From positions 1,057,820 to 1,121,819 of the forward strand of contig NW_003314302.1 in assembly GCF_000143415.4 (NCBI RefSeq): 64,000 nt of DNA. The letters are read 5' to 3'. How positions within the stretch are numbered: the first letter of the stretch is position 1; every line of letters starts with the position of its first letter. Of this stretch, positions 11,561 to 37,309 are shown one piece after another. Source of the DNA: Selaginella moellendorffii. Its lineage: Eukaryota; Plantae; Lycopodiophyta. Position numbers and translations under genes: made by a program. Below the pieces are notes generated by a model. It worked only from the letters and a program-made list of their open reading frames with translations. It was not told the origin of the DNA and ran no database searches.

Positions 11561-11609
11561 TGTATTTTATGGTGTCTATACATCTATACCTAGTGGTTGC
11601 AGAAAGGTG

Positions 11610-15736: not shown

Positions 15737-18700
15737 GAGCTGTCTGTTTGGACTCCCTGAATAAAAATCACTTTTCTTCCTTATCAAGCTCCTCACCACC
15801 TTTCATCAAAGCCACCACCAATTCCCGCAACTTCCGCGTCCCATGTCTCCTTTCTTTCACCGGACAATTAGGACTCAAGGCTTTGGCGCTACTGGACTCG
15901 GGTGCAACTTCCTGCTTCATGGACACGGACTTTGCTGCCCGACATCACGTTCCTCTTTCTCCTACCATACGGGATCTGAGGGTTGAAGGCATCGGCAGGC
16001 ATTTTGTGTCTCCATCTTCTGGACTTAGGGAAACGTTGCCCGTTCGAGTACACATTGGGTCCACTGTCACCGATATCGCCTTCAACATCATCAACAGCAA
16101 GTCCTCCTCTATGGTGCTCGGTCTTCCTTGGTTCCAACTACATCAGCCTCAGATTTGTTGGAAGGACTTACAGCTCATCTCTCCCACATCACCATCTCCC
16201 ACGGCTTCCCCTGCTGTTTATCGAGTCCGAATCAGGAAAAGTTCCCTAAACTCAAATCGGGGTTCTGTTCCTGACTCTACGAAGTTTTCACCCTCTTCTT
16301 TTCCCTCTCTTCCATCTTACACTGGACAGTATCCTCGTCTCATCATTCCATTTAGTCATACACCTCCTCCTATCTCCACAATCACTATGCAAGAACTCCT
16401 TCATGAAGAACCTATTTTCCTTTTTGCTTTGCATGTTTTTCCTGTCAGTCTTCCTGAGAAGTATCATGATTTTGGGGATGTGTTTGACAAGAAAAAAGCT
16501 AGTGTATTGCCTACTCATCGGCCTTATGACTGTCCTATTGATTTACAGGAAGGAGTGTCGCCTCCGTGGGGGCCTATCTACGGGTTATCCCCGTCCGAGC
16601 TTAAGGCCCTCAAAGAGTACGTGGATGAGAACCTTGCCTCAGGGTTCATTCAGCATTCGCAGTCCCCAGCTGGAGCGCCTGTCTTCTTTGTCAAGAAGAA
16701 GGATGGGAGTTTGCGGCTAGTCATCGATTACCGAGGTTTGAACAATGTGACTATTCAGAACCGTTATCCGCTGCCCCTGATCTCAGACCTGTTGGAACGC
16801 CTCGACGGTGCCCGCTTCTTCACCAAGATTGACCTCTGTGGCGCATACAACCTGATCCGGATCCGGCCTGGTGATGAATGGAAGATTGCGTTCCGAACCC
16901 GCTATGGCCACTTCGAGTACACTGTCATGCCATTTGGCTTGACAAATGCTCCAGCAGTTTTCCAACACATGGCGAACGACGTCTTTCGGGAGTTTCTTGA
17001 TCAGATGGTGATCGTCTACCTCGATGACATCCTCATCTACTCAAGAACTCAGGAGGAGCACAACGAACATGTACGCAAGGTGCTAGCAAAGCTACAAGAA
17101 CACGGCCTATACGCAAAGCTTGAGAAATGTTCCTTCGATCAGCAGTCTGTGGAGTTCCTTGGGTACATTGTCACTCCTGAGGGTATCACGATGGATCCTG
17201 CCAAAGTCAAGACTATTCTCGAGTGGGAGCCTCCACAATCAATGTCGGACGTTCAGGTTTTCCTTGGCTTTGCCAACTTCTACCCCAAATTCATTAATCA
17301 CTACTCTAACATTGTCCTTCCTCTCATGCATCTCACTCGCAAGGATGTTCCCTTCTCTTGGTCTACTGCTGCCCAGCACGCCTTCGACACTCTCAAGGCA
17401 GCCTTTAGTTCTGCTCCCGTTTTGATCCATGCTGATTCCTCACAACCTTTCTTCATCGAGGCTGACGCCTCCAACTTTGCCATCGGTGTTGTGCTGTCTC
17501 AACTCGGAGCGGATCAAGAACTTCATCCGGTCGCTTTCCATTCTCGGAAATTCCAGTCTGCGGAGATCAATTACGAAATCCACGACAAGGAGCTCCTTGC
17601 CATCGTGGATTCCTTTGGAGAGTGGCGCCGTTTCTTGGAGGGGGCGGGCCATCAAACAACAGTCTGGACGGATCACAAAAATCTCGAGTACTTTGCCACT
17701 TCTCGAGTTTTAAGCCGTCGTCAAGCAAGGTGGGCACAATTCCTGAGTCGGTTTGACTTTGTTATCAAGTACAGACCTGGAAAGCTTCAAGGTCTTCCTG
17801 ATGCTCTTTCAAGGCGCTCCTATCTCAGTCTCAGGCCTGGTAATCCTGCCTTCGATCAACAGGATCAAATTATCCTCGGTCCTAATCGGCTTCAAGTTAT
17901 GGCAATTTCCCTGGCCCCTCAGGACTCCTCCTTGATGGATGCCATCAGAAACGATCTTCAATCCGATGATCTCGCCAGCGACATTTTCCCCCATCTTCAG
18001 GCTGGACACCCTGTGACTCCCGACTGCCGGCGATTTGACGAGTTCGAGTTCTTAGATGGCTTATTATACCATGGGGAGCAGCTTTACGTTCCTGAAGGTG
18101 ATGCTCGAAGGTTGGTCCTAATGGCATGCCACGATAGCCCGACTGCTGGTCACTTCGGCATTGCGAAAACCTATGAGCTAGTTGCACGGGACTTTTGGTG
18201 GCCTCACATGGACGACTACATCAAAGCTTTTGTTACCTCCTGTGACACTTGCGCCCGGAATAAAGTACCTCGCCACCTTCCTTCAGATTTGCTTCGTTCC
18301 CTTCCAGTCCCTTCAGGTCCTTGGGAATCCATCTCCATGGATTTCTTGAGTGATCTTCCGAGTTCTAGAGGCTTCAACAGCATTTTAGTCGTGGTGGATC
18401 GCTTCACAAAGATGGCGCACTTCTTGCCATGTACCAAGGAGTTTTCGGGCGAGGACATGGCAAAACTGGTATTCAGGGAAATTTTCCGACTTCATGGGAT
18501 TCCTACAGATGTGGTTTTGGATCGGGGGCCTCAGTTCATCTCTCATTTCTGGCAACGGTTTTTGCAGCTGCTTGGAGTGAAGGCCAACCTCTCTTCGGCG
18601 TATCATCCTCAAATTGATGGGCAGTCCGAGCAAACGATTCAGACGTTGGAACAATTCTTGAGGTGCTTTATCAACTATCATCAGGATAACTGGTTCGATA

Positions 18701-19482
18701 TCCTTCCCCTTGCTGAGTTCTCCTATAACAACTCTATTCACTCCTCTCTTCGAATTTCCCCCTTCTTTGCAAACTCTGGCCGAAATCCCCGATTCAATCT
18801 CTCACTTCTTTCTCCATCCGAATCCTCTCATTCAAATCCCCGCTCTAAGGCATTTGTCTCCAACCTCCAAGAAATCCACAACTCCATCTCCTTCCACCTC
18901 CATCGTGCTCAGGAATCTCACAAAACATTTGCCAATGCCCATCGTCAGGATTGTCCCCCTTACAATATCGGGGATAAAGTTTGGCTCCTCAGGCAAAATA
19001 TCTCCACCACCAGGCCCTGTCCAAAACTTGATTTCAAACGCCTCGGTCCTTTCCCTATCACTGTCATCATTAATCCTGTCACTTATCGCCTTGCACTTCC
19101 CTCCTCATATCAAATTCACCCCGTTTTTCATTCCTCTCTCCTTGAGCCTTATATTCCCAGTCCTATTCCCAATCGGGTCATTCCTCCACCTCCACCAGTG
19201 CAGCTCGAGGATGGGTCTGAGTACGAGGTTCAGGACATCCTTGATTCCAAGATTTCACGGTCTAAACTCTACTATCTGGTTGACTGGAAGGGTTACGGGC
19301 CTGAAGAACGCACTTGGGAACCTGCGGACAACCTGATTCATTCTCCTGACCTTGTTCAGGACTTCCACCGCCGCTATCCTAGTCGTCCCAGTCCTCATTC
19401 TTTTTCTCCATCTCCCATCCCTCACCGCTCATCTCATCCTCCTCGTCGTTCTCATTCACATTCTCGTTCCACTCGTTCTTGA
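15643..19482 (+). CDS. pol: Chromovirus pol polyprotein (protease, RT, RNase H, integrase, chromodomain), entered by -1 frameshift
   Basis: LLDSGA, YLDDILI, DAS..G..L, HDKELLAI, HHCC (HDSPTAGH..CDTC), GPF, YEVQDILD..YLVDWKGY..TWEP. Confidence 0.95.
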   Translation: MSQEASPIARVHFASKSTSVAVGKRPCPNKVGAVCLDSLNKNHFSSLSSSSPPFIKATTNSRNFRVPCLLSFTGQLGLKALALLDSGATSCFMDTDFAARHHVPLSPTIRDLRVEGIGRHFVSPSSGLRETLPVRVHIGSTVTDIAFNIINSKSSSMVLGLPWFQLHQPQICWKDLQLISPTSPSPTASPAVYRVRIRKSSLNSNRGSVPDSTKFSPSSFPSLPSYTGQYPRLIIPFSHTPPPISTITMQELLHEEPIFLFALHVFPVSLPEKYHDFGDVFDKKKASVLPTHRPYDCPIDLQEGVSPPWGPIYGLSPSELKALKEYVDENLASGFIQHSQSPAGAPVFFVKKKDGSLRLVIDYRGLNNVTIQNRYPLPLISDLLERLDGARFFTKIDLCGAYNLIRIRPGDEWKIAFRTRYGHFEYTVMPFGLTNAPAVFQHMANDVFREFLDQMVIVYLDDILIYSRTQEEHNEHVRKVLAKLQEHGLYAKLEKCSFDQQSVEFLGYIVTPEGITMDPAKVKTILEWEPPQSMSDVQVFLGFANFYPKFINHYSNIVLPLMHLTRKDVPFSWSTAAQHAFDTLKAAFSSAPVLIHADSSQPFFIEADASNFAIGVVLSQLGADQELHPVAFHSRKFQSAEINYEIHDKELLAIVDSFGEWRRFLEGAGHQTTVWTDHKNLEYFATSRVLSRRQARWAQFLSRFDFVIKYRPGKLQGLPDALSRRSYLSLRPGNPAFDQQDQIILGPNRLQVMAISLAPQDSSLMDAIRNDLQSDDLASDIFPHLQAGHPVTPDCRRFDEFEFLDGLLYHGEQLYVPEGDARRLVLMACHDSPTAGHFGIAKTYELVARDFWWPHMDDYIKAFVTSCDTCARNKVPRHLPSDLLRSLPVPSGPWESISMDFLSDLPSSRGFNSILVVVDRFTKMAHFLPCTKEFSGEDMAKLVFREIFRLHGIPTDVVLDRGPQFISHFWQRFLQLLGVKANLSSAYHPQIDGQSEQTIQTLEQFLRCFINYHQDNWFDILPLAEFSYNNSIHSSLRISPFFANSGRNPRFNLSLLSPSESSHSNPRSKAFVSNLQEIHNSISFHLHRAQESHKTFANAHRQDCPPYNIGDKVWLLRQNISTTRPCPKLDFKRLGPFPITVIINPVTYRLALPSSYQIHPVFHSSLLEPYIPSPIPNRVIPPPPPVQLEDGSEYEVQDILDSKISRSKLYYLVDWKGYGPEERTWEPADNLIHSPDLVQDFHRRYPSRPSPHSFSPSPIPHRSSHPPRRSHSHSRSTRS
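15709..15760 (+). promoter_or_regulatory. -1 ribosomal frameshift signal (G GGA AAC plus stem-loop/pseudoknot)
   Basis: Heptamer GGGAAAC at 15709-15715 in the gag frame; GTCCAAACA (15722-15730) pairs with TGTTTGGAC (15745-15753); pol is in the -1 frame. Confidence 0.85.
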
Positions 19483-19493
19483 GGAGGGGGTGC

Positions 19494-19898
19494 TGTCAGG
19501 AATCCCCCAATTCTTGCCATATTCCTGACTCTCGCTGGATTCTTGACCTGCAGACCACATTCCTGACTCTCAAGACACTTCCTTATTCCTGACTCTCAAG
19601 ACATTCCTAACTCTCGAGACACTTCCCTATTCCTGACTCTCAAGACACTTCCCGATTCCTAAGTCTTGAGCCACATTCCTGATATTGATGTGGCGCCTCC
19701 TCGACCTCAGCTATATTTAAGCCGTCCTTGATCCAAGAGTGGTGGAGCTTCATCAACCTATAGTATATATAGGTTAGCCTTGTTCCATTTCTCCACAATC
19801 TGAATCAACACCAGTCTAAGGCCTCTTCTTTGTTTTCACTAGCTTTTTCTCTTTGTCTTTAGCATTTTCCAGTCTTGATCTTGTTGGGGGTCTTGACA
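19494..19898 (+). repeat. 3' LTR of the chromovirus
   Basis: Direct repeat of 14263-14667, preceded by PPT. Confidence 0.97.
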
Positions 19899-20944
19899 CC
19901 AATCACCAACAAAGACCACCAACAGCCCTCTTTGACAAGAAACTCCAATTTACCAGCACCTTCATCAGCACATGCCTTTAGCAGCTTCATTGGCGAACTC
20001 CATCTTCGAGCACAAGACCACCCACTCCAAGCTCGAGACCTCAACCAGCGCACTTGACACAAACCGACACCACTGCCGAAACGAACCCATCTTTCGTGCA
20101 GTCGTCAATCCTAGTGCTCCAACACAATTCCAATTCCTGCGCCCACTCCAAATACCAAAGCACATCCTCAAAACCTACACCAATGAAGAACCCATCACTC
20201 TGTTACCCGGTATTGGAGAACTCGTCGAGGGACAACTTGACAACGCACCACCAATTTTTCAACAACCCCTCTGACAGAGTCAGCAGCTCAGCACTGAAAC
20301 AACAGTCCGAACTTGGTTCGAAATCAACATGTTCTCTGCAACAACTCTCACCAATCACGCCATCACCCAATCCAGACTCAAATAACTAGATGACATTATC
20401 GAAGAAATCATTCCAAACAAACAAGAATATCCAAAACTCTTCATCGAACTCCATCTCAGCACCAGCAAGTGGAAGACCAGTCTGCATATGGCACCAGCAC
20501 ACTCGACCAACACAACTCGGCTGAACACAACCCAACCCAACACACACTACCGTCGATATTTGCACTGAAAAGAAAGAACAAGCTCACAACGACTTTATCG
20601 ACAATTGGCCCACCAACAGTCTTCCCGAAGTTCTGCCCGAACTGCATGATTGACTGCAGACACAAATCTGACACCGACAACCAGTAGAAGAATGCATATA
20701 TCCAAAACCACGAAGAACATCCAGCAAGTTGGAAGAAGACCAACAATAGCTTATCTAACGTTTAGATAGAGATTTGAAGAATTTAGAAACAAAGAGAAGT
20801 TAAATCAAGTTGTTAGACCCTCCAAGAGAGAGAATTACATCCAACACAAATTATTACTGCGACCTAACTCCGACAAATTAGTATCGGACATCTGCGAAGA
20901 ATACAACAACTACACAACACCACCGGACACACCACCGGCAGGAC

Positions 20945-21062
20945 CCTCGACGACACCCACTGAAGTGCCCAAGCCTGAATCAACACCCTCGACAGCACCC
21001 ACCAAAGTGCCCGAGCCTGAATCAACACCCTCGATAGCACCCACTGAAGTGCCCGAGCCCGA
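20945..21062 (+). repeat. 42-bp tandem repeat (about 3 copies) encoding STPSTAPTEVPEPE
   Basis: CCCTCGA(C/T).. recurs at ~20945, ~20987 and ~21029. Confidence 0.85.
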
Positions 21063-21722
21063 CCGAACATTTGAGCAGTCAACACAGACTACGCCTAAGC
21101 AACAAAACATTTTTCAAGCAGCATACAACCACTTCAAAGGTACATTCACCAACCCCATCTACAGTGACGACGAACGATGAAGTTTCCCACCCAGCTTCAG
21201 ACCAGCACTATTTTCACCATACCGACCGATCTTCACAACACCAATATATTGTGAGTGAGCTAGAGACTCTCCAACCCAGCACGTCTCTTGCACCTCGCTG
21301 TGACCTCAGGCTGTGCTTAGTTGGAGAGGCATACGATCAATGCACCCTTCTATTCCTTAGGGAAGTCTGATCACACCATATATTTTACACATGATTTTAA
21401 GAGCGTTCAAAATGATTGCTAGGCAGTTCTGAAGTTTAGTGTGGTTATTCAGGGCAGCAGTGTGCCTCCTAGTTTTTTACTCCCATTGGAATTTTCAGGC
21501 AGCCAAAGAGCGAGGAACTCGGAGATGGTGAAGATGCGCCAGCGTTGTCAGATTGAAAAGGAGAATGAGCTTTGGCGGAGACTGAGGGAAGTGCCCAAGT
21601 GGCCAATAGTCATCCAATCTATTTAGTCTTTCATTCTGATGGACTCACCGACAAATCTCCCAAATTTTAGGGCAACAATCCTAAAACTAAAACAAACTCT
21701 TAAAAGTAGAAAATACAAGATA

Positions 21723-22681
21723 TTAGCCACACATAAACAGGGCATCAAACCGAGATTGATTTGCTTTTGCTAATCGAATCAGCTTTGCAATCCAGTCTGT
21801 GGCCAGAATCTCTTCCACCTTCAAGCTTGCCAATGGGAATGGAACAATCTCTTTTGCTTTGAGACATGCCTCGTACAAGCTTGGATCGCGGGGAGCCTCA
21901 TACGCTGCTAAAATCTCTGCAAGCCCATCAGCTGGAGTCAAGAAACCATCATGATCTGTGTCGACTGAGTTGAACCTCATGAAGATTTCAGTCTGATTGT
22001 TAGGCTCTCGATGCGTACAGAAGTTGTTATGGTGGTAGTAAACAAAAGCTTGGCTAAACTCACTGAAGTCGATCCTCCCATCTTTGTTTGCATCTTGCAC
22101 GTTGTACAACCACATTTGCAATTTGCTGCCACTTTTGTCCTTGATCCTCTCTGGGCTCAGGCAGTTCTTGAACTCCACCCAATTAAGGACCCCATCACCG
22201 TTTTCATCACAAGCATCATAATAGGATCGATGATAGTGTTCTGACAATAGGAAAAACTGAAAGCCAAAGCTTTTGTATGGGATTGCCCTGGGTAGCATCA
22301 TCATCTTCCAATCCAGATAATCCATGGCATACTCGTACCAACCTAAAACACCATCCTTATTTCTGTCTTTACGTTGCCAGGTAAACTGGTCACGGATGTC
22401 ATGCTGCTTATCAAACCAAGCATCAGCCTCTTCCCTGGTAATATTACCATCTCTGGGATTTACATCCATCTCATCAAGGTATTCTCGAGCAGTCATCTTT
22501 TCGAGCTCAGTTGGTGGAACATGTAAATTATAATAACAATGATTTTCTCTTTCTGCAAGATTTGTTTTTAATACATGCAATTAAGAATTAAAGTTGCCAA
22601 CAACATACCTGATCTTGTTATTTTACTTTGTGCGCCTTGAGTAACCATGGCCAACACAAACATCACCACAATCAAATCCAT
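21723..22681 (-). CDS. Secreted calumenin/CREC-like multi-EF-hand protein, copy A (intact)
   Basis: Exon 1 22681-22609 (signal peptide MDLIVVMFVLAMVTQG), 56-bp intron, exon 2 22552-21723; EF loops DVNPRDGNITREE, DRNKDGVLGWYE, DENGDGVLNWVE, DANKDGRIDFSE, DTDHDGFLTPAD. Confidence 0.88.
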
Positions 22682-22739
22682 ACTAGCTTAGGGTTACTCC
22701 AAAAGCATGGTATATATATGCCTTGGTAAAACCATATAT

Positions 22740-23710
22740 TAAGCAAATATCTTTTGCCTTTGTCATTCCTCGGGAGCAGGATGCTCTTGTCCAAGGCAAG
22801 GATTTCTCACTGTGGAAGAAACTTATTGAGGCATGTCTGTGGAGTGCATTTGCACCTACCTTAGCCATGGGATCTTACTCAAGTCAGACATGGAGCAAGG
22901 AGCAAGGAGCTGACCATCTCTGGAAATGGCTGAAGGACATGTATATGGCAAAACGTCTGATTTGGAAGTGATGAGGCTTCATTCAGTCTTGGACGCTTTC
23001 ATCTTTGAAGATGGTGGGGATATACAACAGCGGGATTCTTTGAGTAGGTTTTCTCAAGGCAAGGAACACAAGGTTCTAACTAGAGCTGGACCTCCTCGTT
23101 TGACGAGGCAGCAATGAAGCTCATGAACACTTCTCAGCTGCATAAGGAATGCTCAAACTTATGAGGTACACCATGCCATGTTTGCAAAAAGGTTAAAGAT
23201 GAGCTCTACCCGTGGAGGCTGTGGGAGGCCAGACATGACTGGAGGCTGTCATGGGTGAGGAGGGCGTACCTCCTATAGTGGTAGATCTACCACACAGCAA
23301 CATGGAGGACGTCCTGACAGGACGTTTTGCAGTGGTCAAGATGCTAATCGTGAACCGATGCGTGTGGTCGAGAATCATATTTGGCTGAACCGGTTCTCAT
23401 GCGAACCACCTTTTGCCAAACCAGTTTGGCCAGGTCCGGGGTGATGTTGCACGAAATGGCCAAGATGGTGTGGTTGTTTTTTGTAAATTGGATTCTTTGG
23501 TCGGCACTGAAGTTTTTGAATTGGTTTTAAGCTAGATTCTAGTTTTAAGGTTTTGCAAAAGGAGGGGCGCGGCAGGAAAATCTGGTTTTGGAACCTATGG
23601 GTAATTCTTTCGGATAATCAATCTGCTATTGCTCTTTCAGAAATTAGAGATATTACAAAGCATATATGGGAGGATCAGATTGCTGATTTATTCACAACGC
23701 TTGGAGTGTG
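22740..23710 (+). mobile_element. Collapsed copia remnant (gag joined to RNase H)
   Basis: LWKWLK..YGKTSDLEVMRL gag-like piece; SDNQSAIAL..TKHI..DQIADLFT RNase H piece; inverted copy at 44745-45660. Confidence 0.7.
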
Positions 23711-23713
23711 AAC

Positions 23714-23890
23714 CGTACCTTATGCTTGGTTCTAGGGAACTGGCATGCTTTTTATATATCCTTCAACGGGAAGAACTTTAAACCACCAACCTACAGAAAA
23801 TCGAATTATGTGGTTTTTGACTCTGGTACGAAAAGTTCAATCAGCTTTAACAGCCAATCATCCAAGAATCAATTACTTTGAGACGGAGTT
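23714..23890 (+). pseudogene. Aspartic protease gene fragment
   Basis: PYLMLGSREL..FNGKNFKPPTYRKSNYVVFDSGTKS matches the 32580-33873 gene. Confidence 0.8.
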
Positions 23891-24888
23891 GTGCTTCACG
23901 GCTTCAAACAACTTGCGGTCCAACTGCCATGGCCTCACAGGAAGCGTCTTACTGGCGTGTAGCAATGGAAGCCGAGATTTCTTCACAGCACAAGAACGAG
24001 AGACATGTTCTTGTTTCTACTGTGCCTTCCAATAGCCAGGCGCGATTTGTGGCGAAAGGATGCTCGCAAGTTCCTGGACTTGACTACAACGACACCTTCG
24101 CTTCAATGGTTAAGCATTCTACTCTTCGTTCCTTGATTAATTTTGCTGCGGTGGGAGACTTTGATCTGGAACAGATGTGACCACAGCGTTTCTTTATGGC
24201 GAGCTTGAAGAAGAAATCTATATGGCACAGCCAGAAGGATTTCTAGCCGCTGGAAAAGAGGATCATCTCTGGCTTCTCAAGAAAGCTGTCTACGGCTTGA
24301 AACAAGCACCGGTACAAACGCTTTGATGATTTTATACTAAGTGTGGCCTTTCCCGTAGCGAGGCAGGCCCGAATCTTTATATTTGGGTGGACGGTGAATC
24401 ATTTGTGATCATCGCTCTTTATGTTGATGATACTCTTGTCACCCATAATCATCGCTTACTGTTTCTCCAGGATAAGCGAGATCTTTGCAGCCAATTCGAG
24501 ATGAAAACTCTTGGCTAGGCTTCCTACTTTCTTGGCATGGAACTTGTGCGTGATTGCTCTCAACGCATCACCAAGCCAAGTATATAGAAGAGATGCTGGC
24601 CAGGTTTTCTATGACGAGCTCTAATCCAGTGGCGACACCAATGGAACCAGGCTGCCAACTTTCCCGAGCCATGTCGCCTGAGACAGAGGACGACAAGAGA
24701 GCCATGGACTCCATCCCTTACAGACAAGCTGTTGGCAGCCTCATGTATCCAGCTGTTTGTAGGCACCCAGATATTTCTTTTGCCGTGAGCAAAGTTAGCC
24801 AATTCCTGGCTAATTCTGGATCTCAACATTGGGCAGCGGTAAAACGCATCGTCAGGTACCTTTGTGGTACTACTTACCTTGGATTGTG

Positions 24889-27800
24889 CTACCAGGGAAA
24901 AGAGCTTACCCTCACGGTGCTGATTTTGGGGGAGACTGTGACACACGCAAGTCCACCTCTGGCTATGGCAGTCTCATGGTGCAGCAGGAAGCAAAGTACA
25001 GTGGCAACTTCTATCACTGAAGCAGAATATTTGGCAGCCTCACAAGCTACCAAAGAAGGTGTGTGGCTACGCTCACTACTTTCTAACCTTGGTGTGAGTG
25101 TGCTCTCAACACTCCCACTGGCACTGTGGCCATCACGAGTGATGCTCATCAGTGGAGAAAGTCCCAGCCCTTCGCGATGGACTTGAAATCGATATCGGGG
25201 TAGTGCTTTTGTGAAGATATCTGCAACCTGAGTGGTTGTGTCGCAGTAGATCAGCTCAATTGTGCCATCTTCCACTTTCTCACGAACAAAATGATGATGA
25301 ATCCCAAAGTGTTTGGTGCGTGAATGAAAGCGAGGATTGGCCGCTAACGCAATGCAGCTTTGATTGTCGCAGAAGAGGCGAGTGGGAGTCTTCACACTCA
25401 CACCAAGGTTAGAAAGTAGTGAGCGTAACCACACACCTTCTTTGGTAGCTTGTGAGGCTGCCAAATATTCTGCTTCAGTACTAGAGGTTGCCACGGTACT
25501 TTGCTTCCTGCTGCACCACGAGACTGTCGCACTACCCAGGGAAAACGAATAGCCAGAGGTGGACTTGCGTGTGTCACAGTCTCCCCCAAAATCAGCATCA
25601 CAGTACCCCGTGAGGGTAAGCGCTTTTCCCTGGTAGCACAATCCAAGGTAAGTAGTACCTCGAAGGTACCTGAAGATGCGTTTCACCGCTGCCCAATGTT
25701 GAGATCCAGGATTAGCCAGGAATTGGCTAACTTTGCTCACGGCAAAAGAAATATCTGGGTGTGTACAAACAGCTGGATACATGAGACTGCCAACAGCTTG
25801 TCTGTAAGGGATGGAGTCCATGGCTCTCTTGTCGTCCTCTGTCTCAGGAGACATGGCTTGTGAAAGCTGGCAGCCTAGTTCCATTGGTGTCGCCACTGGA
25901 TTAGAGCTCGTCATAGAAAACCTGGCCAGCATATCTTCTATATACTTGGCTTGGTGAAGATAGATAGTGCGTTGAGAGCGATCATGCACAAGTTCCATGC
26001 CAAGAAAGTAGGAAGCCGAGCCAAGAGTTTTCATCTCAAATTGGCTGCAAAGATCTCGCTTAACCTGGAGAAACATTAAGCGATGATTATGGATGACAAG
26101 AGTATCATCAACATAAAGAGCGATGATCACAAATGATTCACCCTCCACCCCAATATAAAGATTCGGGTCTGCCTCGCTATGGGAAAAGCCCACACTTAGT
26201 ATAAAATCGTCAAAGCGTTTGTACCAAGATCTGGGTGCTTGTTTCAAGCCGTAGACTGCTTTCTTGAGAAGCCAGAGATGATCCTCTTTTCCAGCGGCTA
26301 GAAATCCTTCTGGCTGTGCCATATAGATTTCTTCTTCAAGCGCACCATAAAGGAACGCCGTGGTCACATCCATCTGTTCCAGATCAAAGTCTCCCACCGC
26401 AGCAAAATTAATCAAGGAATGAAGAGTAGAATGCTTAACCACTGGAGCGAAGGTGTCGTTGTAGTCAAGTCCAGGAACTTGCGAGCATCCTTTCGCCACC
26501 AATCGCGCCTTGTAGCGAACCGAGCCATCAGGATTAAGCTTCAGAGCATACACCCACATGCTCTTGATAATCTGGCGATTGGAAGGCACAGTTGGAACAA
26601 GAACATGTGTCTCGTTCTTTTGCTGTGAAGCAATCTCGGCTTCCATTGCTACACGCCAGTAAGACGCTTCCTGTGAGGCCATGGCTTCTCCATAGGTCCT
26701 CGGAACAGTAGGAGTCCCAGCTGCACGAGAGGAGACCATTGTCTCGATGAGACGCTCAGTAGGCCGCCTTGTGCGGATCGATCTGCGTAGAGGATCTGGA
26801 GGAGGCGGCGGGGTTGGTGGTGTTGGAGTAGAAGCGGGCATAGATTGTTGCATAGGGACTGTTTGAAGCGGCACAGTGATCGTGCCGACAGTCAACTGAT
26901 CTTGTTCCGCTTCAACGTCATTTTCTTCGGTCAAGGTAGGTCTGGAAGTAGAACCTTGACTAGAAGGAAGAAACGAATTCTCGTTGAAAACCACATCTCT
27001 GCTCAGGATCTCCTGCTTCGTGATTGGATTCCAGAGACGATAGGCTTTGTGATCGAGGCTGTAGCCCACAAACACAGCCTTCTGGCTCTTGGGGTCCAAT
27101 TTCTTGCGCATTCCATCAGGGATGTGAGCCCACGCTTCACACCCGAATATTCTCAGATGCGTAACTGTACGTTTCTTGCCACTCCATGCTTCTTCAGGAG
27201 TGATGTCAGCAAGGGCAGAGGTGGGGAGCCGGTTCTGGAGATAGTTCGCCGTCAAGACAGCGTGAAACCAGAAGCTGCGAGGCAAACCACTGGAAAGTAG
27301 CATTGCCCGAGCACTCTCCACTAGTGTGCGATTCTTGCGCTCAGCTACGCCATTCTGTTGTGGAGTCTCTCGCGTTGTAAGTTCTCGCACAATCCCTCCT
27401 TGCTCACACAGCTGGTTGAAAGCATTGGAAGTGAATTCGCCTCCACCATCACTTCTCAATCGCTTGAGCATTTTCCCAGTTTGTGTTTCTCCCATATCCT
27501 TGAAAGTCTGGAAGTAGTGTAACGATTGGGATTTGCGAGCCATAGGGTAGATCATAGTGCGACGACTGTAGTCATCAATGAAACTGATAAAGTATTGGAT
27601 ACCTCCCACTGCTGTGGTGGCCATCGGGCCACACACATCAGTGTGTACAAGTTCCATGAGCTCTGTAGCTCGAGATGCTCCAGTCTTGGGGAAAGGTTGG
27701 CGAGTAGATTTTCCTAGCTGACAGCCCTGGCAAAATGGAAGAACGGCTCTTGGGTCCAGGTCTATACCTTCAACCATCTGCTCGCGTGCGAGCTGCTTGA

Positions 27801-27930
27801 TTCTATCAGCACTAGGATGCCCCAGGCGTGCGTGCCAAAGCTCCAGTGAGTGACTGGTCGTTGTCTTTTGTGCGTGTAGGCCCAGACTCCGTCCAGCAAG
27901 ATCTGGCAGCATGGTAAGGCGGTAGAGGTC
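24889..27930 (-). CDS. pol: Copia pol (GAG-pre-integrase, integrase, RT, RNase H); reads through into inverted host sequence
   Basis: WHARLGH, HTDVCGP, SDGGGEF, YKARLVAKG, LYVDD, DADF, EAEY, ADIFTK; separated from the gag-PR ORF by a frameshift at ~27937. Confidence 0.92.
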   Translation of the reverse strand, partial: DLYRLTMLPDLAGRSLGLHAQKTTTSHSLELWHARLGHPSADRIKQLAREQMVEGIDLDPRAVLPFCQGCQLGKSTRQPFPKTGASRATELMELVHTDVCGPMATTAVGGIQYFISFIDDYSRRTMIYPMARKSQSLHYFQTFKDMGETQTGKMLKRLRSDGGGEFTSNAFNQLCEQGGIVRELTTRETPQQNGVAERKNRTLVESARAMLLSSGLPRSFWFHAVLTANYLQNRLPTSALADITPEEAWSGKKRTVTHLRIFGCEAWAHIPDGMRKKLDPKSQKAVFVGYSLDHKAYRLWNPITKQEILSRDVVFNENSFLPSSQGSTSRPTLTEENDVEAEQDQLTVGTITVPLQTVPMQQSMPASTPTPPTPPPPPDPLRRSIRTRRPTERLIETMVSSRAAGTPTVPRTYGEAMASQEASYWRVAMEAEIASQQKNETHVLVPTVPSNRQIIKSMWVYALKLNPDGSVRYKARLVAKGCSQVPGLDYNDTFAPVVKHSTLHSLINFAAVGDFDLEQMDVTTAFLYGALEEEIYMAQPEGFLAAGKEDHLWLLKKAVYGLKQAPRSWYKRFDDFILSVGFSHSEADPNLYIGVEGESFVIIALYVDDTLVIHNHRLMFLQVKRDLCSQFEMKTLGSASYFLGMELVHDRSQRTIYLHQAKYIEDMLARFSMTSSNPVATPMELGCQLSQAMSPETEDDKRAMDSIPYRQAVGSLMYPAVCTHPDISFAVSKVSQFLANPGSQHWAAVKRIFRYLRGTTYLGLCYQGKALTLTGYCDADFGGDCDTRKSTSGYSFSLGSATVSWCSRKQSTVATSSTEAEYLAASQATKEGVWLRSLLSNLGVSVKTPTRLFCDNQSCIALAANPRFHSRTKHFGIHHHFVREKVEDGTIELIYCDTTTQVADIFTKALPRYRFQVHREGLGLSPLMSITRDGHSASGSVESTLTPRLESSERSHTPSLVACEAAKYSASVIEVATVLCFLLHHETAIARGGLACVTVSPKISTVRVSSFPW

Positions 27931-27936
27931 AGCCGT

Positions 27937-29162
27937 CCAGGCCGGGACGCTGTGAGGATGGCTCCTGTGGTCGAGATCAGCTGGAATTGGCGAGGTGTAA
28001 TGGCGAACTGATACCCATCCTCAGCAAATTGTCCCACAGAGAACAAATTAGCACATAAACCAGGAATATAAAGAACCTCGTGGATCTTTACGACTATTCC
28101 TTGTGGTAAAGTGAACTTGATGGTTCCAATTCCTTTCACAGCAAGCTGCTGGGCATTGCCAACGATGACATACTCCTCTGTGGCTGTAGGATCATAGGCT
28201 TCAAAGTACTTATCACTGTTGAACATATGGTCTGTAGCAGCAGAATCCAGGTAGATGCACTCTGTAGACAGTGCTGCCACTGCCATAGCTCGTGACAAGA
28301 TGAAGGCGTGTACCACCTTTTTCTTTGCATTGTTCCTTACAGGCTTGAGAGATGGATTTTTCACCCAGCATTGAGCTTCGTCATGGCCTTTCTTGTTGCA
28401 ATGAGAACACTTGGGCTTCTTGGATGAAGAGGCTCCTTGTTTCCCTTTGTTCACTGTTTCTTTCCTGAGAGAAGAGTAGAATGCAACGGCCTCTGATCCT
28501 GCTGTTGCTCTTCGTCTCAGATCATCGTCCTGGAGGCTACTGATCACGCCATTCAGGGTTAGAGGAGTTCCAGTGGTAGTGAGGCTACGTATGAGAGGAT
28601 CAAAGGATGGAGGAAGTGTGACGAGCACCAGCTCTGCTTCTTCTTCATCCTCTATGTTTGCTCCCACATCCTTAAGATCATCTAAGATTGTTCTCGCTGC
28701 AGCAAGATGATCCTTGAGGTCGTCCCCTTCAGCCATCACCAGTGCATGAAGCTGCTTCCGTAAAAAGATGCGATGGGATGTTGAAGGGATCTGGTAAGTT
28801 TGCTTCATGGCCTCCCACGCTTCCTTTGCACTCTTGCACCGTCCAATGCAATGGAATTCTCGCCCCTCCAGCGCTGCATGGAATTTGCCCAAAGCTCTCC
28901 GGTCCTTCTTGCGATACTTCGCAGTTTCATCCACTGTAGCTGTATCTGGAAGTGTCTCAGTTCCTGTGGTGATGTCCCAGAGGCCTCGTTCATCCATATA
29001 GGATTCGAATTTTGTCTTCCAGAAGCGCCAGTTCCTCCCATCAAATTTTGGTGGATTTGCGTCCACTGAAACGATATCCGCTGTAGGCACAGTCGGATTT
29101 GTGATGGGAGGGGAAATAGGTGGTGGATTTGGAGGGACATTTGTAGGAACAGTGGCTGCCAT
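27937..29162 (-). CDS. gag: Copia gag-protease
   Basis: PKFDGRNWRFWK, CSHCNKKGHDEAQC knuckle, YLDSAATDHM protease; ATG at 29162. Confidence 0.9.
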
Positions 29163-29211
29163 GGGTGCCGACACCCAATCCCACCACTCGTTCAAGTCTA
29201 GGTCCAGGTTC

Positions 29212-29352
29212 TTAGTCGTCCAGTGCCTCTTGCAAGGCCTGGAGCGCTTGGATTAGGGCACGCCTCTGTCTACGTAGACGGAGGCTCCGATTCACCCTAG
29301 CAAGTGTCGCCCTGATCCTACGGTTTCGAATTCTTCTCGCTCTCCTATGCAT
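29212..29352 (-). CDS. 46-aa Arg-rich uORF immediately after the PBS
   Basis: MHRRARRIRNRRIRATLARVNRSLRLRRQRRALIQALQALQEALDD*. Confidence 0.4.
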   Translation of the reverse strand: MHRRARRIRNRRIRATLARVNRSLRLRRQRRALIQALQALQEALDD

Positions 29353-29959
29353 TGCTCCGATACCATCTAACGAAAGGTGAAACCGTGTGATGGTGCTCAA
29401 GATCCGTCATAGCATATATGGAATGGAAAATGTACATATGTGTGACGTGGTGAACTGGTGAAGACTCGTGTCTCTCCAAGTGGACTAGCCACGTGGCACA
29501 GGGCCACTCTCAACAAGTGGCAACTTCTATCACTGAAGCAGAATATTTGGCAGCCTCACAAGCTACCAAAGAAGGTGTGTGGCTACGCTCACTACTTTCT
29601 AACCTTGGTGTGGGTGTGAAGACTCCCACTCGCCTCTTCTGCGACAATCAAAGTTGCATTGCGTTAGCGGCCAATCCTTGCTTTCATTCACGCACCAAAC
29701 ACTTTGGGATTCATCATCATTTTGTTCGTGAGAAAGTGGAAGATGGCACAATTGAGCTGATATACTGCTATACGACCACTCAGGTTGCAGATATATTCAC
29801 AAAAGCACTACCATTGCGAAGGGCTGGGACTTTCTCCAGTGCGTGCCACGTGGCTAGTCCACGTGGAGAGACGTGTCACACATATGTACATTTCCATTCC
29901 AAGGATCTTGAGCACCATCACACGGTTTCACCTTTCATTAGATGCAGTTGGTCAGGTCT

Positions 29960-30600
29960 CTCAGTTTCTAAACTAGCTTGTTGTCAAATGTCTCTTTCAC
30001 TACTTCAAGGGAACTAAAACGTTTGCTCTTCACCAACATCAGGATATGTTTTCTCTCCGGGCACTGGTGCAGTCACTTGACAGACAACCATTGCTCTTTC
30101 GTCAACAGAGGTCGCAGTTGCAGCTAAGAAGTGCATTTGGTTACATTAGCTTTTAAATGGACTCAGCTATTTTCAGCAAACACCGACACTTATCTACTGT
30201 GACAACCTCAGAGCGATAGGCATACCAAATATATAGAAGTACAATTTCACTTCATACGAGATTAAGTGACCCAGCAGGCTCTCGAGCTCATGCATTTTCC
30301 CACAAGAGACCAAGTCATTGATATCTTCACGATGGCTCTACCACCGAAGGCTCTTGTTCCAGAAGCATGCCAATGCAAGAAACCTCCACTTTTATGCTTG
30401 GGTGGGAGTGTTAGAATATCCATTGTTGTGGATATTTGAGGGAGCTCTCCAGATGTTCTAGAGTCTTCCAGAGGCTTCTAGAGAAGCAGTTAGCTGGTAG
30501 CAGCTCTAAGTAGTTATTGGTAGCTCACATATGTAGCTTCATTTCTTTCATATATGCAAGGTGTGTTCTTCTTCTCAAAAAGAGCCCCTCCAAAGAAATA
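29960..30600 (+). mobile_element. Older copia RNase H remnant with PPT and start of an LTR
   Basis: STSGYVF-like, TIALSSTE, IYCDNL, TKYIEV motifs; GGGTGGGAG-TGTTAGAA at ~30400-30416. Confidence 0.7.
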
Positions 30601-30619
30601 AGAGAACCTTTGGGAGTTA

Positions 30620-30885
30620 AGGTAAAGTATTTCTCTCTAATTTTTATTTAATTCCTATTTTATACCATTTCTTAAAGCTTAAATTTTCTTCTTTTCCTTT
30701 CAGGTGATTATAACATGTTGTTATGGAACTCAGGTACGGAAGACGTTCGTGGAGGCTACCACGTCATACGAGCAACCACAAACGTTTATTTTAGTCATTC
30801 CATCAAGAAACCAAATTCGATTACAGTGGAATTTGGTCAAAAAATGTTGACCAATTGAAGTTCGTTGAAGTTAATCTTGACTAAT
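30620..30885 (+). pseudogene. EUL lectin fragment (intron remnant plus last exon)
   Basis: LLWNSGTEDVRGGYHVIRATTNV matches 54174-54383 in the opposite orientation. Confidence 0.75.
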
Positions 30886-31371
30886 TCTGGAATCTGGACT
30901 CCTCGTCTCCGTCTTTCATTCTTTGCTAGATTCGTTTTGGGGGCGTGCTCGGGTCATACTGCCTTGTCAAGGCACGGCGCGCTAATTGAAAGAGGACAGA
31001 AGTGGTGTATTTTTTCTTTCACATCTCTAGATGATTGCGTGCTGCACTAGGGCCGGAGCGCCACAGCAGCGGCGCAGTGTGATATGTGCGTTCTAATTTT
31101 TTACTTCCACTGGAATTTTCAGGCAGCCAAAGAGCGAGGAACTCGGAGATGGTGAAGATGCGCCAGCGTCGTCAGAGTGACGAGCTTTCGAGGCTGAGGG
31201 ACGTGCCCACGAAGGCACAGCCAATAGCGATTCACCAAATCTGATTAGTTTGTTTTTTCCTTCTACCTACCAGTTTGCAAACTAAAACAAACTCTTGATT
31301 AAATTCAACGAAAGCCAAAACTACGCAGAGAAAATCAGACAAATAAGGTTTATCAACACATAAACAGGGGA

Positions 31372-32153
31372 TCAAATCGCTTTTGTTAACAAAATCATCT
31401 TCGCAATCCAGTCTGTAGCCAGAATCTCTTCCACCTTCAAGCTTGCCAATGGGAATGGAACAATCTCTTTTGCTTTAAGACATAAGCTTGGATCACGGGG
31501 AGCCTCGTACGCTGCTAAAATCTCTGCAAACCCATCAGCTGGAGTCAAGAAACCATCACAATCTCTACTGAGTTGAACCTCATGAAGATTGGTAGTAAAC
31601 AAAAGCTTGGCTAAACTCGCTGAAGTCGATCCTCCCATCCTTGTTTGCATCTTGCACATTGTACAACACATTTGCAATTTTCTGCCGTTGTTGCCCTTAA
31701 TCCTCTCTGGGCTCAGGCAGTTCTTGAACTCCACCCAGTTAAGAACCCCATCACCATTTTCATCACAGGCATTGTAATAGGATTGATGATAGTGTTCTGG
31801 CAATAGGAAGCCAAAGTTTTTGTATGGGATTGCACTCGGTAGCATCATCATCTTCCAATCCAGATAATCCATGGCATACTCGAACCAGCCCAAAACACCA
31901 TCCTTGTTTCTGTCTTTGCGTTGCCAGATGAATTCGTCGAGAATTGCATGCGGCTTATCAAGCCAAACATCAGCTTGCAATATTGCCATCTCTATTTACG
32001 TCCATCTCATCAAGGTATTTTCAAGCAGTCACCCTTTCGAGCTCAGTCGTAAATTACGATAATAAGGACCTTCCCTTGCTGCAACATCAACATAACTGAT
32101 CTTGTTATTTTACATTCCTTGAGTAACCATGGCCATCACCACAATCAAATCCA
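31372..32153 (-). pseudogene. Calumenin-like EF-hand copy B (deletions, frameshifts)
   Basis: Paralog of copy A with a frameshift at LQM|CCT and several deletions. Confidence 0.85.
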
Positions 32154-32255
32154 TACAGGGTTACTCGGCATAAAACCAAATGGCCGTTTCAACACAATTA
32201 GAACTAGCAATCTATTTAATGGAATTTATTTTCCAATAGTTAATACATGTTTTTA

Positions 32256-32579: not shown

Positions 32580-33873
32580 TTAAGGACAAGAAGATTCAGC
32601 AAATGACAGTTCATACTCCTCCAGATCATATACAATCATATGATCTCGCTGCATTGCGTAGCCAAAGATCCCCATGATTGCATCGCCCTCTTCGTCCTTG
32701 ATTTCTAAGGATGCTAGCTCAGGACAATAAAACTCATGCAGCTGCATTGTGATGAAGTTTAGTTGTTTAACCTGGTTTAAGAAGAAAAAGAAAGAGTTTC
32801 AAAGCAATAAAAATGGATGGGTCTTTTGAACTTACAGTAAAATCGCCACCCTCGAAGTGAAACGTGATTGGATTGAATCGTGGTCGGGGTGTATACTGCC
32901 GTTGCCCATCTGGGGCGTAGCATCCACGCCCCGTTTTCACGTAGCCCAAGTCCGTCTCAAAGTACTTATTGATTTCTTGGATGATTGGCTGGTAAAGCTG
33001 ATTGATCAGAAATGTACTTTTCGTACCGGAGTCAAAAACCACATAATTTGATTTTCTGTAGGTTGGTGGTCTAAAGTTCTTCCCGTTAAAAGATATAGAT
33101 AGCAACTGGATCATATACTGTCTATCTGGTCTTGCTCGCATTTGGTTATAACTCCATTCTCCCAATTCTCTAGAACCAAGCATAAGGTACGGTGTGTCTG
33201 CTAAACGATCTAAGTACACTAATCCCTCATACCTATCAGTCAGGCAATAAGCAAATTTTCTGATCTGAAACTCATGTACCAGACCAAGTGTCCCTTGGGC
33301 AAACCCGACAATGCCATTTATCGCTGTCCAGTCTAGAGAGCCAAAGTTTTCCAGCCCTGTTCCTGCCCCTAACTTAATAAATCTAGCATCCCTCTGTTCT
33401 GGATCATCTGTTTCCAATTCCATCAAATCTTCAACCATAATCCCTGTAACTGAGTGATTTCCCATGTAGGACACCTTAAATTTGCATTGGTTGTTGTTAG
33501 TGCATTTGAAGGTTAAACCTGGGGGGCATTCGGCGCACCTCATAACTGTCCAGGAAGAGGATTCTTCTACAGATCTGTGGATCCAGGTTAGAAGGCTTCC
33601 TGTGTCGAAGATCAGGGTTTCCATTTTGGCATTTCCCATGGTGCCACGCTTCAGGTGCATCACCAGCGGATTGCTTTGGACAGGAATTGGCACACGGTCC
33701 ACGATCGCCAATGCCCGAAGGTGGTCCTGCTCTGGATTGTGAACAGAGGCATTTGTGGCTGGCCGGATTGGAATAGGTGTCCTCTTTGCAGCTGTAAAAA
33801 GGAAGAGGAAGAAAAGTAGACACAAAAGTCTGGAAGAGGTGTGCTCGAGATTTAGAGCCGAGGAGGAAGCCAT
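32580..33873 (-). CDS. Secreted/anchored A1 (pepsin/nepenthesin-like) aspartic protease
   Basis: ATG 33873; hydrophobic LLCLLFFLFLF; catalytic FDTGS and FDSGT; 64-bp intron 32835-32772; last exon ..GIFGYAMQRDHMIVYDLEEYELSFAESSCP*. Confidence 0.85.
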
Positions 33874-34499
33874 GGAAGATGGGAGCGTGAATGGTAGAGA
33901 GGAAGGACAGACTAGCTTGAAAGCACGCAGGCCGACGTGATGCAAGAAACAGCAATGTTTGTGCGCCGATTGGAGCTTTCGCTGCTCCAGACGTTGTGAT
34001 AAGCTCCAGGGCTCTTCACCCTTGGATGGCCGCTGGTTTTGGCTGCTGGAAGAGCTTGGTTTCCTCCGGAGGAGCTGCCGCTGGATCAATTCTTTCTTCG
34101 GACGGCATCGCTGCCTCTCCGCTCGATCCTCCTGCCGAATCTTCTCCCTCGCAATCGACTTGGGTCCTGGCCTGCCAAAGACGAGGTGCGCGAAGAAATT
34201 TCAGCAAGATTAGCTGAAAGATCTAAGAGGATGCCGATTACCTAGCAGTGCTCTTGGTATTAATCGCAGGGTTTTTCCAGAGTGATCTGATGACCCTGCT
34301 CGTGAAGCACTCTCCTTGCTCTCCGTGGTTTCCTTGGCCTTTTAAAGGAGTCTTCCAGCTCCTGCGAATCGCCAGCTTTTAACATGATCTACCAAACTTG
34401 TTTGGTAGCGAGTGTCGAAGACCACTGATCGTACTCTAGAAAAAAATAACTTTTTTCTTAAGATGATTTATGTTGATTTATCTCTCTGGCTATAAACTC

Positions 34500-36860: not shown

Positions 36861-37309
36861 TAACCACATGAAACTTCAGAACTTCCTAGAAACCTTTTTG
36901 AACGCTCTTAAAATCATGTATAAAATACATCTATATACATACGATTGCACGATGTGATTGGACTTCTCCAAATTTGTTGGTAAGGAATAGAACTGATCTC
37001 CAACTAGGCACAGTGTAACAGTCCGGTTGGCTGATCCGAATCAAGCTCCTGACTAATGCCTGCTATATGAAAATCAACTACTGAAATAAAGAACCCATGT
37101 CCAAGTGCATTCCACAAATAAATCAAAGGTCTCGACTTCTTCCATTGTGTGACCACCTTAGGATGTAAATTCGCTTGCATCTGGAATCTCTAGTTCTATT
37201 GTTTTAAACGAGTGCTGTTTACAAATCTGTTACCCAAGAGGTGATATTTATGTTCGATGGTTATATGCTGTTGGATCTTTTAGAAACAAATATTGTAGAA
37301 AGAGAAGGT

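Follow-up and report, generated by a model that had tools for sequence, protein, structure and literature searches.

A Ty1/copia element nested in antisense within a fragment of its own family in Selaginella moellendorffii: a probable rearrangement scar with predicted hairpin potential

The window analysed here is a stretch of 64,000 nucleotides of the Selaginella moellendorffii genome, in which a minus-strand Ty1/copia element (hereafter M, 25103-29515) is enclosed by a plus-strand fragment (hereafter P) that belongs to the same family and is present as two pieces, 23922-25102 (P1) and 29516-29944 (P2 and a decayed LTR). M and P share 95.7% nucleotide identity over 1.5 kb, in agreement with the initial annotation, which had described a minus-strand copia within plus-strand sequence of its own family; a nested and a host copy of one family on opposite strands constitute an autoinsertion. 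The host had also been taken for a copy of the family; the family assignment stands, but P is a 5'-truncated, deletion-riddled fragment and not a full copy. All the structural statements of that annotation were recovered, with offsets of at most ~30 bp. The surroundings of the locus are a patchwork rich in transposable elements (TEs) and pseudogenes. The features on which the following description is based are collected in Table 1.

Table 1. Features of the nested copia locus (positions within the window)
Feature	Position	Strand	Remarks
Gag-protease reading frame of M	27762..29195	-	ORF list and Pfam
INT-RT-RNase H reading frame of M	24889..27912	-	crosses junction 25102/25103, 71 further codons antisense to P1
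Single frame change of M, gag-PR to INT-RT-RH	27876..27930	-	frame -3 up to 27930, frame -2 from 27876
5' LTR of M, 150 bp	29366..29515	-	starts TGTTGAGAG
PBS, TGGTATCGGAGC	29354..29365	-	directly adjoins the M 5' LTR
Polypurine-tract (PPT) region of M, CCAGTGGGAG	25112..25121	-	position directly upstream of LTR start
3' LTR remnant of M, 9 bp, TGTTGAGAG	25103..25111	-	equals the first 9 nt of the 5' LTR, right after the PPT
First canonical AAUAAA downstream of M	23687..23692	-	A+U-rich stretch just beyond arm B
P1, left piece of P (RT to mid RNase H)	23922..25102	+	95.75% identical to M, 1177 aligned columns
P2, right piece of P (rest of RNase H), 326 bp	29516..29841	+	inverted match of M 25150-25494
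Decayed 3' LTR of P	29843..29944	+	98/100 aligned columns identical to M 5' LTR
Left copy of target duplication, 103 bp	25000..25102	+	right copy 29516-29618, 102/103 identical
Arm A (RT-RNase H of M, element positions 2831-4123)	25393..26685	-	inverted-repeat alignment, fold
Arm B in the minus-strand transcript	23926..25102	antisense of P1	inverted-repeat alignment
Hairpin loop, 290 nt	25103..25392	-	RNase H end, 3' untranslated stretch, PPT, 9-bp LTR remnant

The Pfam matches of M follow the copia domain order gag - protease - integrase - RT - RNase H, with Retrotran_gag_2, Pol_BBD and DUF4219 in the first reading frame, and gag_pre-integrs, rve, SH3_retrovirus and RVT_2 in the second; moreover, four full-length copia polyproteins align collinearly to M, from about residue 13-18 through the last residue. 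M had been considered near-intact, and the 5' LTR, the PBS, gag and pol are indeed in place, but one frame break is found between protease and integrase. The 5' LTR carries a G-box (CACGTG) at LTR position 21, an ACGT at position 68 and a TATA-like motif at position 98, and no AATAAA was detected when its 150 bp were scanned. The adjoining PBS coincides with the plant initiator-Met PBS at 11 of 12 positions; no tRNA gene was found within the 64-kb window. The location of the PBS beside the 5' LTR, and of the PPT before the 3' LTR, is that expected of a copia element. The 3' LTR itself, as had been noticed, is reduced to 9 bp: TGTTGAGAG follows CCAGTGGGAG at 25103-25121, a 9-mer match with a chance probability there of ~4e-6, and P sequence comes immediately after. 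M has, in consequence, a single full LTR and is a truncated member of the family, not a complete element, and its pol reading frame enters P in antisense, as had also been reported, continuing 214 nt beyond the junction.

P starts at about 23922, within RT, where its 5' truncation abuts a TAXi-like pseudogene fragment. Relative to M, P1 shows seven deletions, is distributed over three reading frames and has two stop-creating substitutions, P2 (95.7% identical to M) shows one 20-nt deletion on the P side, and the 3' LTR of P has lost LTR positions 1-16 together with several internal blocks, the TATA-like motif included. The TATA-like motif and the G-box are both kept in the M LTR and gone from the P LTR. 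All 8 internal indels between M and P are deletions in P (two-sided sign test, p ~0.008), and M is open in two frames over ~1400 codons. Given that the indels are all on the P side, together with the disrupted frames and stops of P1 and the losses in the P LTR, M is the younger and better preserved of the two. P1 and P2, in turn, are assigned to one element because they show the same 95.7% identity to M, coincide at 102 of the 103 positions of their overlap, and share five P-specific SNPs.

The insertion of M is non-canonical, since the flanking direct repeat is not a short (4-6 bp) integrase target-site duplication (TSD) but a 103-bp duplication in place of the 5 bp of normal integration. Both duplicates carry the five P-specific variants against M, and the diagnostic SNP proposed to distinguish host and insert was confirmed (TCTATCACT in P, TCTAGTACT in M). 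The 5' LTR end of M is complete to its terminal TG, and the 3' LTR side is joined to P without microhomology.

These junctions bear on the possibility of an assembly chimera, in which case 25102/25103 and 29515/29516 would not exist in the plant. Repeat-driven misjoins fall in shared same-orientation sequence, whereas both junctions join non-homologous sequence; besides, the ends are structured, one junction lying exactly at the terminal TG of the LTR and the other consisting of the PPT plus 9 nt of LTR. The single difference between the 103-bp duplicates is as for real, slightly aged DNA, and the arms of the inverted repeat described below are 4.3% apart with 7 indels, and therefore are not a palindromic read artefact. 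A chimera would be favored by the repeat-rich nature of the region, by the presence of two haplotypes in the published assembly of S. moellendorffii, and by the lack of an independent record of the junction in a protein word search, where the junction-spanning ORF tail (residues 860-1007) retrieved only angiosperm copia proteins; their identity was 40-60%, and no alignment exceeded 63% of the query. We consider a chimera unlikely, and the structure is very probably real.

Regarding its origin, M, as a younger copy of the same family, would have entered the RNase H region of P in opposite orientation through a non-canonical event, and the decay of the older P by deletions may have occurred either before or after the arrival of M. 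Two routes both fit the sequence. The first one is a one-ended integration, in which integrase would join the complete LTR end, and the other end, incomplete or degraded, would be handled by host end-joining and fill-in. In the second one, M would have integrated normally and its 3' LTR would have been broken afterwards, the break being repaired with ~98 bp copied off an uninterrupted P allele and then by end-joining. Two other origins were rejected. A linearised 1-LTR or 2-LTR circle predicts either no repeated 9 nt or extra LTR sequence upstream of the 5' LTR, and neither situation is present; a microhomology join through the 8-nt CTCCCACT, which is located beside the left junction in both partners, was discarded given that the 9-bp LTR remnant separates CTCCCACT from P.

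The opposite orientation of M and P generates a main inverted repeat whose arms (A and B in Table 1) are 95.7% identical in the aligned columns, with 7 indels that total 116 nt and are all deletions in P. An inverted repeat of ~1.2 kb with a loop of ~290 bp had been anticipated, and both sizes hold, but not the term near-identical that was applied to the arms. The portion 25150-25392 of the loop doubles as the inverted match of P2 (29619-29841). When the minus-strand RNA was folded computationally, a minimum free energy of -2321 kcal/mol was obtained, versus -820 to -872 for five shuffles; in the predicted fold, 1139 pairs connect the two arms and 18 perfect helices reach at least 21 bp (899 bp in all), and 424 of the 1157 P1 21-mers are identical in M. 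The calculated structure, with ~1.2 kb of arms, 96% paired, thus agrees with the long-hairpin potential previously proposed, and an inverted duplication within a single transcript is also the long-hairpin arrangement of a locus of the Mu killer type (see below). No Rfam match was found in 20000-32000.

A hairpin of this kind could also arise if the element had folded back during reverse transcription, so that P1 would be a copy of M. A related fragment in the window with its own inverted gag piece (12424-12885) gives this snap-back some plausibility. Nevertheless, P1 matches P2 and not M at 5 of 5 diagnostic variants in the 103-bp overlap, P1 and P2 are equally distant from M (95.7%), the indels are exclusively on the P side, and the arm terminates at the 9-bp LTR remnant and not at a fold-back point. 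The sharing of SNPs and the indel asymmetry rule out that both arms were made off one template copy, and we regard a snap-back as extremely improbable.

A second inverted repeat is formed by the two LTRs (29366-29515 / 29843-29944), with a 327-nt loop and a fold of -282 kcal/mol (z -22). This pair would lie outside the own transcript of M and needs read-in transcription from outside. An EF-hand paralogue is present upstream on the minus strand (31378-32091); read-in from it as the driver of the LTR-LTR hairpin was judged less likely, given the AAUAAA signals at 30790 and 30648.

For the main hairpin, the proposed read-through of M into P is consistent with the signals present: M has neither 3' R/U5 nor an LTR terminator, no minus-strand AAUAAA was found between 25103 and 23926, and the first one, at 23692, is past arm B. 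Plant poly(A) signals are loose, and therefore a missing AAUAAA is weak evidence for read-through. A transcript started in the M 5' LTR should extend across P1 in antisense, probably as far as the AAUAAA at 23692. Devoid of 3' R/U5, this RNA would be unable to finish reverse transcription in cis, which would make M a dead-end copy. [quoted passage not shown]

Whether any such RNA is to be expected depends on the activity of the LTR. An inert fossil, in which the LTR is silent as in most plant TEs, no hairpin RNA is produced and only a nested-TE scar remains, has close to an even chance; the patchwork of TEs and pseudogenes in the region and the frame break in M are in line with it. The relative youth of M, with duplicates identical at 102 of 103 positions and open frames of ~1400 codons, points in the other direction, therefore the silence of M is not a given. 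Also against an inert fossil, long inverted repeats in plants tend to yield small RNAs even when transcription is low. Detectable hairpin siRNAs from this locus are given odds somewhat below even.

A stronger proposal is that the LTR-driven hairpin RNA is converted to siRNAs and that these act in trans to silence the copia family as a whole, in the way that Mu killer silences MuDR. The hairpin potential is large and read-through likely, the M LTR retains the TATA-like motif and the G-box lost by the P LTR, and there is a precedent in maize as well as a suggestive case in Arabidopsis. However, the main arms correspond to the part that codes for RT/RNase H and are devoid of LTR and promoter sequence, so they do not cover the promoter or the terminal region as in a locus of the Mu killer type, and any siRNAs would therefore be post-transcriptional rather than promoter-directed. 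In Arabidopsis, post-transcriptional gene silencing (PTGS) alone failed to silence EVD (PMC11624286). Furthermore, PMC5569507 reports that a 24-nt siRNA peak is not obvious in S. moellendorffii, and also cites missing CHH methylation for this species. Moreover, no further close copy of the family turned up as a potential target: the family in the 64-kb window comprises M, P and a relative of 84-92% identity that lies outside the arm region, and a protein word search with the RT/RNase H of the arm as the query returned thousands of copia proteins, the best of them 51% identical and none from Selaginella. We consider trans-silencing of this sort improbable, and a measurable family-wide effect equally so.

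One more fragment related to M, R, is present in this window at 11609-13679. The break points of R and P1 are within ~35 nt of each other in element coordinates. The idea that R and P1 are halves of one element was not supported, since their identity to M is 84% versus 95.7% and the intervening 10 kb are not one clean insertion.

Mu killer is an inverted duplication of a partial MuDR, transcribed from a flanking promoter; its hairpin extends over the 5' part of mudrA and over the terminal inverted repeat, which serves as the promoter, and its siRNAs and heritable silencing were reportedly shown by genetics. Like the M/P locus, Mu killer is a natural transposon inverted repeat that gives a long hairpin if transcribed, and the derivative itself is unable to transpose. 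In contrast, M/P derives from an LTR retrotransposon and would use its own LTR as promoter, whereas Mu killer is a DNA-transposon derivative with a flanking promoter; the two arms of M/P descend from separate copies that differ by 4.3% and include only RT/RNase H, and any silencing by them is hypothetical. In PMC11624286, with citation of Slotkin et al. 2003/2005, Mu killer of maize is referred to as an inverted-duplication silencing locus.

Another counterpart of M/P is an antisense self-nested EVD (ATCOPIA93) in one silenced rdr6-EVD Arabidopsis line (PMC11624286), also a Ty1/copia element in antisense within a copy of itself. It was suggested that silencing may start from hairpin or convergent dsRNA produced by that insertion (PMC11624286). 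According to its reconstruction from read pairs, the EVD case retains both LTRs along with a target-site duplication, and the hairpins proposed are those of the LTRs; M/P lacks the 3' LTR, has a 103-bp duplication and a decayed fragment as host, and forms its main hairpin internally, although an inverted LTR-LTR pair is present here too. Composite insertions with inverted Ac fragments, which are formed by alternative transposition in maize, produce 21-22-nt siRNAs from their transcribed regions, and dsRNA and heritable repression were demonstrated (bioRxiv 10.1101/2020.01.07.897926). In these insertions, as in M/P, aberrant transposition gives rise to an inverted repeat made up of the sequence of the element itself; they are class II and are transcribed from the promoter of the element or a flanking one, whereas M/P is class I and is described here only at the DNA level. 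Finally, in LTR-retrotransposon autoinsertions a younger copy is nested within an older one of the same family, as in M/P, but coding regions are not commonly targeted and ~80% show 5-bp TSDs (PMC6911290), in contrast with the RNase H coding target, the 103-bp duplication and the truncated LTR observed in this work.

The idea of hairpin silencing is itself already established by Mu killer and the antisense self-nested EVD, and judged by its sequence the M/P locus could be a nested-TE scar of ordinary appearance to which a well-known hypothesis has been attached. The reading that we favor, with a probability of roughly 60%, is that the locus represents a genuine rearrangement scar with latent hairpin potential, and at most a candidate silencer. 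We consider it quite unlikely, slightly more so than family-wide silencing as such, that the complete scheme operates, i.e. that a one-ended self-insertion made a dead-end copia whose read-through RNA yields 21-22-nt siRNAs that curb the family post-transcriptionally.

The junctions, with a full 5' LTR end, a 9-bp 3' LTR and a 103-bp duplication, are a rare natural footprint of non-canonical LTR-retrotransposon insertion. How plants first recognize active retrotransposons is still debated, and natural hairpin loci are among the few concrete answers; M/P adds a clean case, with arms marked by SNPs, from a plant outside the seed plants whose small-RNA landscape is unusual. The SNPs that distinguish the P-type and M-type arms could show whether Selaginella dices such loci, and into which size class. 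If the complete scheme were true, an LTR-driven hairpin generator would be at work in a lycophyte whose 24-nt siRNA/CHH-methylation pathway is not prominent.

Positions 23922-29944 contain two oppositely oriented copies of a single Ty1/copia family: a minus-strand element, M (25103-29515), lies inside a plus-strand fragment, P, which is split into the pieces P1 and P2 and ends in a decayed LTR (table below). The left neighbour of P1 is a fragment of a TAXi-like aspartic-protease pseudogene. By protein alignment M is collinear with four full-length database copia polyproteins from residue ~13-18 through the last residue, and in this alignment it shows no stop codon and a single frame change, between 27930 and 27876. 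The initial annotation had described a near-intact minus-strand copia with 5' LTR, PBS, gag and pol inside a plus-strand copy of its own family; all these parts are present, apart from the frame change, and the strand and family of the host were correctly assigned, but the host is only a two-piece fragment. The reduction of the 3' LTR to 9 bp was likewise correctly recognized, and plus-strand P sequence starts immediately after this remnant. The pol frame does run into the host in antisense, where it stays open for 71 codons past the joint, an extension to which we attach no meaning.

Features of the nested copia copies M and P
Feature	Position	Strand	Description
M 5' LTR	29366-29515	-	150 bp, starts TGTTGAGAG
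M PBS	29354-29365	-	TGGTATCGGAGC
M gag-protease frame	27762-29195	-	reading frame
M integrase-RT-RNase H frame	24889-27912	-	reading frame
M 3' end	25103-25111	-	LTR start, cut off after 9 nt; the purine tract CCAGTGGGAG precedes it
P1	~23922-25102	+	RT to mid RNase H
P2	29516-29841	+	remainder of RNase H
P LTR, decayed	29843-29944	+	directly after P2

The ~1.2-kb inverted repeat with a ~290-bp loop that had been proposed for this locus is real and far above chance. Its arms, 23926-25102 in P1 and 25393-26685 in M, are separated by a 290-nt spacer, and their gapped alignment contains 1127 matches, 50 mismatches (95.75% identity) and seven indels that amount to 116 nt in all; P2 is 95.7% identical to M 25150-25494, with one 20-nt indel. 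The minus-strand RNA from 26700 to 23900 is predicted to fold at -2321 kcal/mol, versus -820 to -872 in five shuffles. In this fold 1139 pairs connect the two arms, and there are 18 unbroken helices of at least 21 bp, together 899 bp (the longest, 88 bp). Identical 21-mers in M were found for 424 of the 1157 present in P1.

Internal indels between P and M are one-sided, all eight being deletions in P, and P1 requires three reading frames and carries two stop-creating substitutions where M is open. The LTR of P is identical to that of M at 98/100 aligned columns, and lacks positions 1-16 together with several internal blocks, the TATA-like motif among them. In addition, 103 bp are common to P1 and P2 (25000-25102 and 29516-29618, 102/103 identical), and at five sites both copies of this stretch differ from M in the same way. 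The one-sided indels, the decay of P and the shared variants thus indicate that P1 and P2 are parts of one older element and that M is a younger one. The possibility of a single element folded by snap-back during reverse transcription is ruled out by the P-side indels and the variants shared by P1 and P2. P and M differ by 64 substitutions, 27 of them synonymous (42% vs 23% expected at random), so part of this divergence arose with the lineages still under selection. An assembly or read artefact is probably not behind the arrangement: identical arms would be expected from a palindromic read artefact, whereas these are 95.75% identical, and a repeat-driven misjoin is expected within shared sequence in the same orientation, whereas both joints (25102/25103 and 29515/29516) connect non-homologous sequence, one of them exactly at the terminal TG of the LTR and the other at the polypurine tract (PPT) plus 9 nt. 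When the ORF tail across the junction was used in a protein word search, no second record of the joint was obtained.

Normal integration leaves two LTRs and usually a 5-bp duplication; at this locus only one end is perfect, the second being truncated and joined blunt, and the target duplication spans 103 bp. In LTR-retrotransposon autoinsertions, 5-bp TSDs represent ~80% of the TSDs (PMC6911290). Given that a full 5' LTR requires plus-strand strong-stop DNA, a complete 3' LTR must at one time have been available as template, and hence the 3' LTR of M was presumably lost once cDNA synthesis was over or nearly so. As judged from the sequence, two routes would fit. In the first one, a cDNA with a degraded or still single-stranded 3' LTR would have undergone one-ended integration, the host joining its other end to a nick ~100 bp away, with subsequent fill-in. 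In the second, normal integration would have been followed by a break inside the 3' LTR of M, a ~98-nt extension of the P1 end templated by an uninterrupted P allele, and end-joining of the extended end to the 9-bp LTR stub; the P-type SNPs in the extension fit this copying step. One difference in 103 bp would place the event very roughly at ~0.4 My, an estimate with a huge error that uses a rate borrowed from other plants (1.3e-8 per site per year). An 8-nt match, CTCCCACT, is present in both partners beside the left joint, at 25112-25119 and in the RNase H region of the family (e.g. 29623-29630); the 9-bp LTR remnant stands between this match and the joint, and in antisense of RNase H the match reads AGTGGGAG, the polypurine tract of M.

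A related copia fragment, R (11609-13679, plus strand), shares 84-92% nucleotide identity with M. It includes an LTR piece, PBS and leader, sense gag (12424-12617), antisense gag (12607-12885) and then integrase, and carries a small fold-back of its own (arms 12424-12576 and 12607-12757). The end of R (13673) and the start of P1 (23922) fall within ~35 nt in element coordinates (~2797 and ~2827). R and P1 could be the two parts of a single element with 10 kb between them, but their identity to M is unequal (84% vs 95.7%), and the nearness of the break points could be a coincidence. The decayed 3' LTR of P is followed directly by a piece of RNase H from another copia family (30021-30343, plus strand), in which P seems to be inserted, only ~25-40 codons from the spot homologous to the M site in P; this closeness could reflect a nesting hot spot, or chance. 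A Ty3/gypsy chromovirus (14263-19793, plus strand) shows 300-bp LTR cores 97% identical, a gag frame (14759-15280) and a 1279-aa pol frame with protease, RT, RNase H, integrase and chromodomain. EF-hand paralogues with 58-91% protein identity occur in both orientations (21461-22700, 31085-32166, 36235-36862, 42785-43760, 51319-51973 and others); the one near the locus shows 94% identity to SELMODRAFT_419239, and the four matches listed all come from S. moellendorffii. Interleaved with them are a TAXi-like aspartic-protease gene (32767-34089, minus strand) and fragments of it (23683-23833 and 44372-44718), and the cluster represents a gene pair that underwent segmental duplication and retrotransposon invasion. 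An intact-looking pentatricopeptide-repeat gene (PPR, E-motif; 741 aa) is located at 8008-10233 on the minus strand.

The sequence of M is devoid of a 3' R/U5 and of any LTR terminator. Its RNA would be unable to make the first strand transfer in cis, and M would thus be a dead-end copy. Transcripts started in its LTR should continue into P1 in antisense. A G-box is found at LTR position 21 and a TATA-like motif at 98; AATAAA is absent. On the minus strand no AAUAAA was found from 25103 to 23926, and the first one appears just past the P1 arm, at 23692, within sequence of 61% A+U; this placement would fit a transcript that holds the entire hairpin, although plant poly(A) signals are loose. If this RNA is made, Dicer-like enzymes should process it with no need for an RNA-dependent RNA polymerase. 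A second inverted repeat, absent from the initial annotation, is formed by the M 5' LTR and the P 3' LTR around a 327-nt loop (RNA fold -282 kcal/mol, z -22). It contains LTR sequence but sits upstream of the M start site and depends on read-in transcription; with such transcription from outside, the pair could give rise to LTR-directed dsRNA. The EF-hand paralogue upstream of it has AAUAAA at 30790 and 30648, before the pair is reached.

It had also been predicted that the locus is a 'killer', in which LTR-driven hairpin RNA would generate family-wide siRNAs as in maize Mu killer. This label is not earned, given the lack of LTR sequence in the arms, of an obvious 24-nt peak in the species and of a further close family copy. 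Mu killer covers the terminal repeat of MuDR, which is the MuDR promoter; in contrast, the 1.2-kb arms consist of RT/RNase H. For Arabidopsis EVD, PTGS did not bring silencing, and Pol IV-RdDM together with LTR siRNAs was required (PMC11624286). In S. moellendorffii, where the 24-nt peak is not obvious, missing CHH methylation has been cited and no phased siRNA clusters were found (PMC5569507). Beyond M and P, no close family copy was found in the window, the only relative being R, which does not overlap the arm region; among the protein database matches from a word search, the best for this region is 51% identical. Unlike these points, the LTR-LTR repeat would count in favour of the 'killer' reading.

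The concept of a hairpin-forming or self-nested transposable element is already established, and Mu killer is one known case of it. Other established cases are the Ac/Ds composite insertions (bioRxiv 10.1101/2020.01.07.897926) and an antisense self-nested EVD (PMC11624286), and 'autoinsertions' are a known class of LTR-retrotransposon insertion (PMC6911290). What distinguishes the present case is that, on sequence grounds, it appears to combine two genuinely distinct copies, nested in antisense, with a joint of non-canonical type.
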